Below are positions 32,501 through 63,773 of a stretch of DNA of 64,000 bases, one piece after another. A program made the position numbers and the translations under genes. The notes beneath the pieces are model-generated. The model was not told where the DNA came from, did not search any database, and was given only the letters and a program-made list of their open reading frames with translations. Numbering within the stretch: position 1 is the stretch's first letter; each line of letters opens with the position of its first letter. Source of the DNA: Octopus bimaculoides (Eukaryota); NCBI RefSeq assembly GCF_001194135.2, contig NC_069005.1, positions 35,224,021 through 35,288,020 of the forward strand, read 5' to 3'.

Positions 32501-35500
32501 TTAAGGAGTTCGTCTCTTAAAGCGAGGAGATTGTCGTCGATGCATTTGTTGATTCTGTAGACAATGGCTAACTGATCGAGTCATCTTCGAAGGTACTGGT
32601 GAATCATCTGTTTGAAATATTAGCTGGTGAGTTTTACTCTTTTTCACTTCCTTCACAATGGTCTTTACTGTCTCCAGATTCTCTAATCGACCACAATCTT
32701 TCACTGTCGTCTAAAATAGAAAAAGATTTAAGCAGACAGGATAAAGATAAAAAAAACATTTATTTCTATAGAATATACAAGAGAACAGTAGAGACATTGA
32801 CTGGGATTACAGAGAGATATCACTGAGTGTTGAATAGATTATACTTCTGAGAAATTCTGCACTTATTTTGATAAAATAAGGCAGGTAGAATTAAATGTCA
32901 AGTTCAGAGGAAGCAAACATGATGTCTGTAGCAGATGTAAACACAATAACCAAACATCCAAATGAATCTCTAGTTTGTGCTGTCAGATATTTTCAGTATT
33001 TCTTCCCCCTCCTCCTCCTCCATTTCATTGAATATTTTAAGTGAACACCCCCTCCTCTAACCTTACCCTATTAATGCCTGCAACCAGTGCATTTAGGTTT
33101 CATTTGTTCTTTTCGTGTCATTATTAGAACTGATATAATATATATCATCATCATTGTTTAACATCTGCATTTCATGCTGGCATGGGTAGAACATATACAT
33201 ACACAAAGTACCAGTTAAATACTAAGAGCCTTTCCTTGATAGAGAAAGGCAGATTGTATAATGCTTGTGTATGTACAGCTATGTTACATGGCAGTGAAAC
33301 TACAGTAACGTTGGGCTTTGAAAAGTTGGAGGTGGTATTAGATGAGTTGCGTAAACAAAAAACAATTTATTGTTGATGTAATTTTGTTAAAAAATGCAAA
33401 AATGTCTGAATTTGATGTCATTTACAATGTGATATTCAGTTGCAGCCCTTACCTTGACATAACAGAGTTTGTTAGAACAGTCAGCCTGGTCAGAGTGACA
33501 TAGTTAAGGAGGGAGAAAGAAAGAAACTCGCTAACTTACCTTAGATAGTGAAGATAACAACTTTAAAGATTTGGATAAACTTTCAGACTCTTCAGGGGAA
33601 TGAAAAGACACAGGTGGTGTTGGTACAGCTGGTTTTGGGGGAATTCGAACCTGAACTGAATTCTGCAGAAAATCAGAAAAAAAGTCCTTGCTAAGCTAAA
33701 ATTATTTTTAGAATTTTATCTTTATTTTATGCCCAAGGATGGCAATGGGTTCTACACTGCCCAGATTTTGTAAATAAAATAATTCCCAGACAAGAGACGA
33801 TTGTTGTGACATCTGTGGGCAGAAGTGGGCTTCCAGCTTTGGACTGCAGAGCCACATGCATTCTCATCAGAGAACACAGAATTTGTTGTCATTGGACACT
33901 GTTGGAAGACCTATCAATGTCAGAAGTAATCAACAAGATGAAGGAGAAAGACAAAGAACTGAAGCTTAAGTCATTTCTATCAGATGTTTAGAGAGGCCAG
34001 GTTACAGTGTGAGAGCGTTTTATGAACAGGACACATTGTGTTCAAAGGAGGATGGGAGTAAAATTGTGTTCAATGGAACAAACACTAAGGCTTAAGATTG
34101 TGTTAAGGGAGGTAACACAACTCAATTTCACAAATTTCTGTAAACAAAAGACTGTTTTTGTCATCTTAAATGATTTCTGATAAAGAAACCTTAATTTTAG
34201 GCAAGGTTTTGTGAATGAAACCAACTTCAGTAGTTTATTTCATCGACTGCTGAAAGACTGAAAGGAAAAGTTGACCATAGCAAGATTTGAGTTCACAAAT
34301 GTAAAGGGGAAAACATAAGAAACAGCCCAAAGTATTTCTTCTTCTGTTTCAACAGTTCTGCCAGCTTCCAGTTTTTTTGTCATTCAAAATTATTATCCTT
34401 ATTTTTTTTAAAGTAAATAAAAACACCAGAGAAATATACTTACAAGATAACCAAGTTCTAGTTTTGTATAGGTTTTCAAGTTCCTGACACACAATTTGGG
34501 GAACTCCTTTCGTTTCTGGGCTATATTAAGGATTGCATCATCAAGTTGTATTGTTAATGCCTCACTTGTTGATTTCTTCTTTTCTAAGTTCATGTCACTA
34601 GAATCTGGAAGCGCAATTGAAAACGGGTGGTCATCATGGCATATAAATAGTTTGAGAAAAGAACACATTCTAGCAAAAATCCTTGCACCTTACAGACTGT
34701 GAATGTTTCATATTTCAGTGGTGCCTTACTGCAAACAGCAAGTAGAATATAAGACAATAATGTGCTAATGCTTTAGATGGTAGTGGTGAACTTGTGTTAA
34801 TTCTTAATTAGGGCCATAATTAAGATATGTCAGTTATTGATTTCTTAGATACGAGGTCTCAATTTTGGAGAAGGGTAGAGTCAGCATCAACCCTTCCTTC
34901 CCTCTACTACTTGACTGGAACTTTATCAGTTCCCCACAGAAAGGTGACGTAAGCTTTGGTTTAATTTAAAACCAGAAGGGATTACAAGTAAACAACACAA
35001 GGCAGCCACAGCCCTAACAATTCTACTTGTCCACTGGGATCAACAAATGGAATATTATGAGATTGTCATCAACACTATTGTTGCTTTAATTGCTAATGAC
35101 TTTACACACTCTGCACTAGACGAATTGCCATGAACGAGAGAAGAAGAGAAAGAAGAATGCCAAGAATGCCAAGGAATTCTTGGTCCACTGACACGTAGAA
35201 TGTTTGCACAATTGCTGAACGACTTACACTTTCATAGTGTAAGTCAGTTGAAAGACAGAGATATTGGCGTTAGGAAGGGCATCAAGCTGTAGAAACTCTG
35301 CCAAATTAGACTGGAGCCTGGTGTTGCCATCCGGTTTCACCAGTCCTCAGTCAAATCGTCCAACCCATGCTAGCATGGAAAGCGGACGTTAAACGATGAT
35401 GATGATGATGATGATCAGCCAAAATAAAGGACATTAAAAGAGACGATGCCAAAGATAGGAAAAGTCTATTAGAGATAATAATGAAAAGAAATTTACCTTT

Positions 35501-35582
35501 CTTTCCATCTTCTGTGATCTGTAAGTCTGGTTGTTCAACACGGACATTGGACATGAATATTTGTTTAAACACCTGTGTGGAT

Positions 35583-61900: not shown

Positions 61901-63773
61901 ACCTAACTCATATGTGGTTTTTATTTTCTGGATCAGTTTTCTTTTTGCCTCCTTTTCTCTTCCCAGTCTTCCCTGGACTTTCCTTTTGTGTCTGATGAAA
62001 GACTTTTTCCGAAACATTATAACCTTTGCTCTATAACTTTTTTTCCTTCCTTGAGTGTCTTCTTTAATATTAACAGAAATGTTCCTTGTACTTTTGTTGC
62101 TTTTTGTTATTTGTATTTGCTTTGGTCTATCTGTGTGTGTGCATATGTAATATAATTGTATTAACTTTTCTACCTGTAGGCAGGGGTGAAATCTGCTCTA
62201 TGTGTGGCCATTGGACATTCAGACTTTGAGAAAATAATATCTTTAAATAAAAGGTGAGTTAAAAACTTGCGTGGTTCATATAAAATACTGGGTGTTTCTC
62301 TGGTGTTCTTGCTACTTAATACTGAGATGATTTTCATCTTCTACTGCATCTTATATAGTACATGGATGGCTACAGCAGAAGTGTTAAGGTCAATTTTTTC
62401 CCTAGTGAAGTGATGGGTGTAAAGAGAATGATAGAAAGAGCCATGCTTCAAATATGTAAAAACCTCTTGTTTTAACTAGTTTAGGGAAAATAATGAAAAA
62501 CAAAAACAAAAAAAAAACACCAAAACATTTTACTACTTTGGTCTCTTTTCAGATTTCCAGATTTCATTGTTCCTTGTCTTGGAGTACATCCAGTTCAGGT
62601 AGGAATATTTGAATAATTTCACTTCACATCTAAAATGTTGGTTATTTTTATTTTAATGGTTTAGTTATTAAAATGCATCATGACAACAGCCATGATACAT
62701 TTTAAGGCCTTTGTTACTGGTGAAAGGGATAGAGGGAGGACATTAGAGACAACAGAGTGAACTCTACCAAAGGAACTCAAAGGCCATGGTTGGGTTAAAC
62801 CATGATAATGGATCAAGTCCACTACCCAACAACAGGAATGGTCCTAATGTCAGGCTTCCACACAGTTTCTGTCTATCAAATTTCATCACAAAGTATTGGT
62901 CAACCTAAGGCTGTAGTAGAGGTACCTAAGCTATTTTATAGATAACTTAAGGTTTGAAACTGAAATCACATGGTCCTAAAACCAAATTCTCTACCACACA
63001 ACCACGTCTGTGCCTAAAGTTAACCAAGATGAAATTAATTCCAAAACTAACATCTTTTCAAAACCTGCCAGAATCTCTTAAAGATTTTATTTCTTTCATC
63101 TTTTGTCTTTTGCTTGTTTCAATCATTAGACTGTGGCCATGCTGGAACACTGCCTTGAAGAATTTTTAGTCGAATGAATTTGCACCCTGTACTTATTTTT
63201 GATATAAGGCTAGTACTTATTCTACCGGTCCCTTTTGCTGAACCGCTAAGTTACAGGGATGTAAACATACCAACACCAGTTGTCAAATGGTAGTTGGAGA
63301 CAAGCACAAAGACACACACACACACACATATGACGGGCTTCTTTCAATTTCCATCTACCAAATCCACTCACAAGACTTTGGTCAGCCAGAAGCTATATTT
63401 GAAAACACTTGCCCAAGGTGCCACCGACACCAGAACCATTTTTTCGGGAAGCAGACATGTGCCTCTTTCCAATATTTTGAGGCTGATTTGAATGGATAAA
63501 AACTTTTTCCTGGCTTTGACTGGTAACTTTGCTAGAACACCTTCAACATATTCCTCTAGAATTAGATAAACGGAGGCAGTGGAAATTAAATGTCCTTGAG
63601 ACGAATTGAAACGTTTTAAATAGGATATGAACTCAGAAGTCTGTATGTAGTTTAGTGTTTTATTTATTTCTTGTGTTACGACCAACAATTATATCTAACC
63701 AAGATGTCATGGAGAAAGCTTTTATTATTTTCAGGAGGAAGAAGATGGAACCAGTAAATGTGTGATGGATGAG
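58998..63773 (+). CDS. TATDN3: TatD family DNase TATDN3, 5' part (continues beyond the window)
   Basis: Exons 58998-59066 MAGNLSLFSIDAHCHLADSQFTN; 60908-60940 DIESVIERALK; 62180-62253 AGVKSALCVAIGHSDFEKIISLNKR; 62553-62598 FPDFIVPCLGVHPVQ; 63735-63773 EEEDGTSKCVMDE. Phase-consistent, with the TatD DxHxH motif and the TATDN3-like PCLGVHPVQ motif. Confidence 0.9.

Follow-up and report, generated by a model that had tools for sequence, protein, structure and literature searches.

How does the gene of a telomere protein come to lie between two genes that, in several other animals, stand head to head? The question is raised by a locus of the octopus Octopus bimaculoides (scaffold CM046625.1), where NSL1, predicted to encode a kinetochore protein of the Mis14 family, lies on the minus strand and is followed on the plus strand by POT1 and then by TATDN3. 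In mammals, NSL1 and TATDN3 are annotated as a divergent pair, located at 1q32.3 in human. The window analysed here is a stretch of 64,000 nucleotides of AT-rich DNA with eight runs of N, corresponding to about positions 35,224,021–35,288,020 of the 35,489,836-bp scaffold and situated some 200 kb from one scaffold end; the octopus gene order was read from one assembly, GCA_001194135.2, whose locus for the NSL1-like protein shows 100% identity to positions 22501–47359 of the window. A first-pass annotation of the window had placed POT1 between divergent NSL1 and TATDN3 genes, and this order is confirmed by exon reconstruction and by matches in Pfam and PDB. The head-to-head NSL1–TATDN3 pair is ancient and common to vertebrates and molluscs, and the octopus order is either a change that occurred in the octopus lineage or a scaffolding error. 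The reading that we prefer, with a probability of roughly 0.6, is that the spacer of the old pair expanded in coleoid cephalopods and that a POT1-bearing segment entered it in the line leading to octopuses, once this had separated from cuttlefish.

An ancient head-to-head gene pair

Relatives of NSL1 served as anchors from which genomic neighbourhoods were read. NSL1 lies head-to-head with a gene of the TatD_DNase family in gelada, opossum, Haliotis rubra, Haliotis asinina and the whelk Babylonia areolata, the coding starts being separated by 158, 138, 171, 130 and 4,988 bp, respectively. In the cuttlefish Sepia (Acanthosepion) pharaonis, NSL1 is separated by a 7,814-bp spacer from a divergent neighbour that carries exon 1 of TATDN3. 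For four of these species, the first exons on the TatD side and the lengths of the spacers were checked and confirmed. Individual exons of human TATDN3 are matched by the Haliotis neighbour with 50–76% identity. The Sepia neighbour starts with MADHVATCIDAHCHLVDPQFLH, which matches octopus TATDN3 exon 1 (MAGNLSLFSIDAHCHLADSQFTN) and stops at the same splice position. Since the same two genes directly adjoin each other, in divergent orientation, in several lineages that are far apart, their association is not a matter of chance, and the ancient linkage supposed by the first-pass annotation is borne out. The scallop NSL1 gene is located at a contig end and is uninformative in this respect.

The Sepia locus bears directly on the position of POT1. 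Neither the spacer, which is free of N, nor the 10 kb beyond NSL1 yielded a POT1 match at E ≤ 1, and comparison of the Sepia spacer with the octopus spacers found no non-coding conservation. The gene model of the Sepia neighbour (1–2186 of the extracted locus, minus strand) comprises 606 residues and has no Pfam match on record; since it starts with TATDN3 exon 1, a fusion or an error of modelling is probable. The Sepia NSL1 model (10001–10120), for its part, carries a long N-terminal extension without match.

Identity of the three octopus genes

Gene identifications are based on Pfam and PDB searches. The human POT1 and human TATDN3 sequences used as tblastn queries served for locating exons only. 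Coordinates are given in Table 1, and the database gene calls at the locus agree with the range found here for NSL1 and with the start of POT1.

The spliced NSL1 exons match exactly a 261-residue protein (P0001) annotated as 'uncharacterized protein LOC106867934'. By itself, this protein has Mis14 (PF08641) as its top Pfam match, under the cut-off (15.5 bits and E = 0.023, with a cut-off of 24.9), and no match among PDB sequences. An exhaustive HMMER search with it recovered nine relatives, from cuttlefish, abalone, whelk, scallop, an annelid, a horseshoe crab, a spider and others, and Mis14 is matched by six of the ten family sequences (best E = 5.7e-7). A further, mammal-dominated protein search added Babylonia as the sole additional invertebrate among the matches listed. 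The profile built from the ten sequences, all of them from invertebrates, reaches human NSL1 at E = 7.5e-14 (5LSK_N; about 8e-14 for 8PPR_N), with profile positions 12–200 covered and the next PDB match at 0.41. Moreover, members of the family in Haliotis, Babylonia and Sepia are head-to-head with TATDN3, like mammalian NSL1, and in octopus a single gene stands between the two. Judged by these profile and neighbourhood comparisons, LOC106867934 is the NSL1 orthologue; the name given to it in the first pass withstood a reciprocal comparison with hidden Markov models at the level of the profile.

The first alignment of TATDN3 with its human counterpart left an 11-residue hole at the first exon junction. 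A scan for phase-0 micro-exons yielded a 33-nt exon (DIESVIERALK) that makes the alignment gapless, the match to human TATDN3 (2Y1H, residues 6–72) having an E of 8.5e-17, followed by the TatD structures YcfH (1.3e-7) and YjjV (1.5e-5). The first 76 residues match Pfam TatD_DNase (PF01026) with 32.6 bits (cut-off 27), and the N-terminal HxH motif, predicted to bind metal, is present as DAHCHL. A protein search with this N-terminal part returned no candidates; octopus TATDN3 is apparently absent from the database searched.

POT1 falls into a well-supported and an incomplete half. Exons 1–8 are AG/GT-bounded, in phase and free of stop codons, and their 336 residues contain OB1 (PF02765; residues 13–142, E = 3.5e-26, 92.1 bits) and the second OB fold (POT1PC, PF16686; residues 159–308, E = 1.2e-27, 97.1 bits). 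Human POT1 aligns with residues 9–307 of this product at E = 2.2e-56. Exon 1 is the least secure of the eight, being one of six listed candidates upstream of exon 2 that combine an ATG with a donor site (nested ATGs at three sites); the annotated gene call begins at 42014, and phase 0 of the predicted exon agrees with exon 2.

The terminal coding exon aligns with human residues 564–630 in tblastn (E = 0.008), and with human residues 576–642 as a second stretch in the human POT1 search. The end phase of exon 8 is 1, the entry phase of the terminal exon is 0, and the human query found no significant tblastn counterpart of residues ~340–563 anywhere in the window. Given this phase mismatch and this missing stretch, POT1 is not continuous between the two exons, which are separated by 3.7 kb of assembled sequence: the TPP1-binding half, comprising OB3 and the resolvase-like domain, is missing or unassembled. 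The POT1 gene call in the database has a 365-residue product with the same two Pfam domains, and an attempt to rebuild this product gave no convincing terminal exon; human POT1 has 634 residues. A candidate zinc-motif exon (..IRCLWCHVL.., 53069–53206), weakly matched by tblastn, was rejected because it sits on a perfect palindrome. This palindrome of ~68 bp (53087–53155), in a small contig between two gaps, mimics an open reading frame (ORF) containing a CxxC motif.

Table 1. Features of the octopus locus (positions counted from the first nucleotide of the window)
Feature	Position	Strand	Remarks
NSL1 gene (predicted Mis14-family kinetochore protein)	32501–37359	-	5 coding exons, no internal assembly gap
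NSL1 exons	37359–37144, 35572–35497, 34604–34444, 33662–33540, 32710–32501	-	all GT-AG
NSL1 proximal promoter-like motif cluster	37360–37450	-	consensus matches only
Assembly gap, NSL1–POT1 spacer	38158–38427		270 N; flanks share no sequence
Direct repeat, copy A (~440 bp)	41048–41485	+	530 bp upstream of predicted POT1 exon 1
Interstitial telomeric repeat (TTAGGG)3	41588–41635, tract 41603–41620	-	(CCCTAA)3 on plus strand; ~100 bp after copy A
POT1 gene	about 42014–56068	+	N-terminal exons and terminal exon
POT1 predicted exon 1 (MELSKF, donor GTAAGT)	42014–42031	+	weakly supported
Gap in POT1 intron 1	42993–43092		100 N; same 49-bp word on both flanks (42944–42992 = 43093–43141)
POT1 exons 2–8	43638–43749, 45099–45238, 46122–46262, 47275–47382, 48607–48680, 50112–50247, 50907–51186	+	encode OB1, OB2
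Gap in POT1 intron 6	49282–49450		169 N; exon phases match across, human POT1 alignment continuous
Expected POT1 OB3 and Holliday-junction-resolvase-like exons	51187–55867	+	none found; gaps 52427–52726 and 53282–53933; palindrome 53087–53155
Gaps between POT1 exon 8 and terminal exon	52427–52726, 53282–53933		952 N in total; second 652 N
POT1 terminal coding exon (VKFFNN...FDTVIAA, then stop)	55868–56068	+	weak alignment to human C-terminus
Assembly gap, POT1–TATDN3 spacer	57710–58005		296 N; interspersed repeats on flanks
Direct repeat, copy B	58269–58739	+	260 bp upstream of TATDN3 ATG
TATDN3 proximal promoter-like motifs	58940–58997	+	CCAAT -46, CGTCA -35, CACGTG -28 (consensus matches only)
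TATDN3 exons 1–5	58998–59066, 60908–60940, 62180–62253, 62553–62598, 63735–63773	+	gene continues past the window
SINE-like copies	35888–36063, 40792–41059, 44566–44763, 46458–46713, 48057–48219, 49935–49981, 54650–54814, 58077–58257, 60613–60778

Promoter regions

In octopus, 21,638 bp separate the ATG of NSL1 from that of TATDN3. Upstream of NSL1, consensus matches comprise TTTGAA at -16 relative to the ATG, an NRF1-like site GCACATGCGC at about -35, TGACGTCA at -61 and CCAAT at -85. The NRF1-like site (37385–37394) differs by one mismatch from GCGCATGCGC, which occurs in perfect form upstream of NSL1 at -34 in Haliotis (about 9966–9975 of the locus) and at -33 in Babylonia (about 9967–9976). 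A motif scan of the AT-rich sequence upstream of predicted POT1 exon 1 gave a single CCAAT. Together with the motifs in front of TATDN3, this suggests that NSL1 and TATDN3 each retained a core promoter of their own and that POT1 did not take over the shared one.

The first-pass annotation had envisaged, as one possibility, that POT1 took over the divergent promoter slot, and that a kinetochore gene and a telomere gene may now be co-regulated. NSL1 and POT1 are indeed divergently oriented, but their coding starts are farther apart than the roughly 1 kb within which the starts of a bidirectional-promoter pair would lie: measured from the NSL1 ATG, predicted POT1 exon 1 is 4,654 bp away and the first secure exon of POT1 6,278 bp. 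A takeover of the promoter is not supported by this spacing of at least 4.65 kb across repeats and a gap, nor by the motif clusters kept at NSL1 and TATDN3. Co-regulation of NSL1 and POT1 is likewise not supported, nothing in this analysis showing it.

Assembly gaps and repeats around POT1

The gaps of the locus differ in character. The one in intron 1 of POT1 numbers exactly 100 N, a figure commonly entered where the true size is unknown, and is probably spurious, with a length of zero, since its identical 49-bp flanks represent overlapping contig ends. Most other gaps are short and of non-round estimated length (270, 169, 652 and 296 N), which would imply links by read pairs across them. The exons of POT1 are consistent in order, strand and phase across three contigs.

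The ~440-bp direct repeat flanks POT1 in two copies, the sole ones in the window, which are ~96% identical (counted on the alignment) apart from indels of 3 and 30 bp. The insertion of POT1 could itself have given rise to this duplication. In front of each copy lies a short interspersed element (SINE), a different one in the two cases. This SINE-like repeat, which has an (ATG)n tail, is represented by at least nine copies with 65–90% identity, spread over intronic and spacer sequence of all three genes. Retroelement-like interspersed copies are also present (57426–57709, about 21064–21420, 33134–33373 and, on the minus strand, 23183–23617); among them, the ORF at 23183–23617 alone matches RVT_1, weakly and below the Pfam cut-off.

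Some 400 bp upstream of predicted POT1 exon 1, a (TTAGGG)3 tract stands between the two copies of a 15-bp direct duplication, CCCTTTTCAAACCAA (41588–41602 and 41621–41635); in 100 shuffles, such a number of matches never occurred. This tract and the flanking repeat are compatible with a real rearrangement, without proving one. That a telomeric tract lies close to the gene of a telomere protein is most likely a coincidence.

Origin of the octopus gene order

The reading that we prefer starts from a compact NSL1–TATDN3 pair with a shared spacer of ~150 bp, presumably a bidirectional promoter. This spacer would have expanded in coleoid cephalopods, reaching 7.8 kb in cuttlefish, and a segment of ~14–17 kb with POT1, in the same orientation as TATDN3, would then have entered it once the octopus lineage had diverged from that of cuttlefish and squid. 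The old partners may each keep their proximal promoter, POT1 merely sitting in a widened, repeat-rich spacer, with no evident promoter shared by NSL1 and POT1. Entry of POT1 in the octopus lineage is the parsimonious reading, since this place is without POT1 in mammals, in gastropods and in another coleoid. The first-pass annotation had left two possibilities, namely that POT1 moved in or that it was lost from the slot in vertebrates. The former is favoured. A loss is not, because vertebrates, gastropods and the cuttlefish all lack POT1 there, so that at least three independent losses would be needed. Indeed, an ancestral NSL1–POT1–TATDN3 trio has nothing in its favour beyond the octopus arrangement itself; the slot is without POT1 in two mammals, three gastropods and the cuttlefish, four of the spacers measure 130–171 bp, and several precise and independent losses would be required, which makes this explanation extremely improbable. 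The direction, timing and mechanism of the change, like all of its regulatory consequences, are what we infer from these comparisons.

Several observations weigh against a real insertion into an ancient pair. The pair is not universal: the linkage, which holds in three gastropods and a cuttlefish, is not seen in Owenia, Tachypleus and a spider, where no TatD gene lies within 10 kb of NSL1. The octopus order comes from a single assembly, no NSL1 of another octopod having been found in the protein database searched, and the evidence on POT1 copies is limited to the window rather than genome-wide. The POT1 block (43093–57709) is bounded by gaps on both sides, each junction falling within repeats; a direct repeat on either side of POT1 could mislead a scaffolder; and POT1 is incomplete, with ~240 residues of its C-terminal half missing around two further gaps in a poorly assembled locus. 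Accordingly, the octopus order may alternatively be a scaffolding artefact, in which the POT1 contigs (from about 38428 or 43093 to 57709) derive from another place and became interleaved between the contigs of NSL1 and TATDN3, drawn in by the ~440-bp repeat and by the SINE and retroelement copies at contig ends, while the real octopus pair is uninterrupted. This would be consistent with the broken POT1 model and with the spacing of NSL1 and TATDN3 that results if the block is removed, about 2–7 kb, which resembles the 7.8 kb of Sepia and the 5 kb of Babylonia. Nevertheless, two independent false joins would be required. The short, non-round gaps with the read-pair links they would imply, the exact 49-bp overlap at the 100-N gap, and POT1 contigs that agree in exon order and strand also argue for a correct assembly. 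An artefact appears unlikely to us.

If the insertion is real, the sequence inserted need not be the working POT1 gene. It might be a partial duplicate, that is, a paralogue or a decaying copy limited to OB1, OB2 and the terminal exon, with a full-length POT1 elsewhere. The annotated product, with its two OB folds in 365 residues as against the 634 of human POT1, would fit such a copy, as would the lack of OB3 and resolvase-like exons in the 3.7 kb assembled between exon 8 and the terminal exon and the conflicting phases of these two exons. The ~96% identity of the flanking repeat even suggests a young event, if the repeat was created by the insertion. On the other hand, none of the eight N-terminal exons is disrupted, their splice sites being canonical and their frames free of stop codons, the match to human POT1 shows strong conservation (E = 2.2e-56), and two gaps of estimated length, totalling 952 N, occur exactly where the missing exons are expected. 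We regard this special case of a real insertion as improbable. It is tempting to speculate further that the sole octopod POT1 was relocated into the spacer by repair of a double-strand break, which left behind the (TTAGGG)3 tract and the ~440-bp duplication, and that NSL1 and POT1, close to the end of a chromosome, have come to share a divergent regulatory landscape. Taken as a whole, this scenario seems to us decidedly improbable.

Other features of the window

An Rfam scan of the whole window gave no match. Past the 3′ end of NSL1 lies a cluster of genes or exons for trypsin-like serine proteases (PF00089), at 2959–3270 (minus strand), 15856–16152 and 18670–19011 (both plus strand) and 24195–29652 (minus strand). 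ARAGORN reports a tRNA-Ser(GGA)-like sequence at 9171–9245 on the minus strand, which has no Rfam match at the gathering score and may be the head of a SINE. A long (TG/CA)-rich microsatellite array at 9962–10699 adjoins an 802-N gap and yields artificial ORFs of ~200 codons in several frames.

Relation to known systems

The locus offers a new example of a known phenomenon, with no new mechanism and no new kind of system. An 'uncharacterized' octopus gene can now be named NSL1, and the NSL1–TATDN3 divergent pair is documented as common to vertebrates and molluscs, with spacers of 130–171 bp in mammals and abalones. The literature searched contained no paper on this pair as conserved microsynteny, the two genes being merely listed together in gene tables. 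The coleoid loci provide a concrete case of such a pair that is stretched in cuttlefish and interrupted in octopus, within reorganised genomes. As by-products, the analysis yields the NSL1 annotation, the TATDN3 micro-exon and a caution about the incomplete POT1 model of octopus, which is relevant to studies of telomere proteins in cephalopods.

The mammalian pair consists of the same orthologues in the same head-to-head orientation as in octopus, but the spacers of 158 bp in gelada and 138 bp in opossum leave no room for a gene, whereas the 21.6 kb between the octopus starts hold POT1 and numerous repeats. In mammals, short interstitial telomeric tracts are described as traces left by the repair of double-strand breaks (Nergadze et al. 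2007, PMC2246262; PMC7215372). Like them, the octopus (TTAGGG)3 tract lies inside unique sequence with a short flanking duplication, and it may mark a repair junction; a link to the insertion of POT1 is conjecture. As for the genomic setting, Schmidbaur et al. 2022 (PMC9023564) concerns a large-scale reorganisation of cephalopod genomes; the NSL1–TATDN3 pair and POT1 are not mentioned in the study or in the supplements searched. As in the loss of microsynteny in coleoids, an ancient two-gene block kept from vertebrates to gastropods has been loosened in Sepia and interrupted in Octopus, in keeping with genomes that have expanded and been reshuffled. In contrast to that loss, octopus NSL1 and TATDN3 stay linked in their original orientation, with a third gene intercalated between them.

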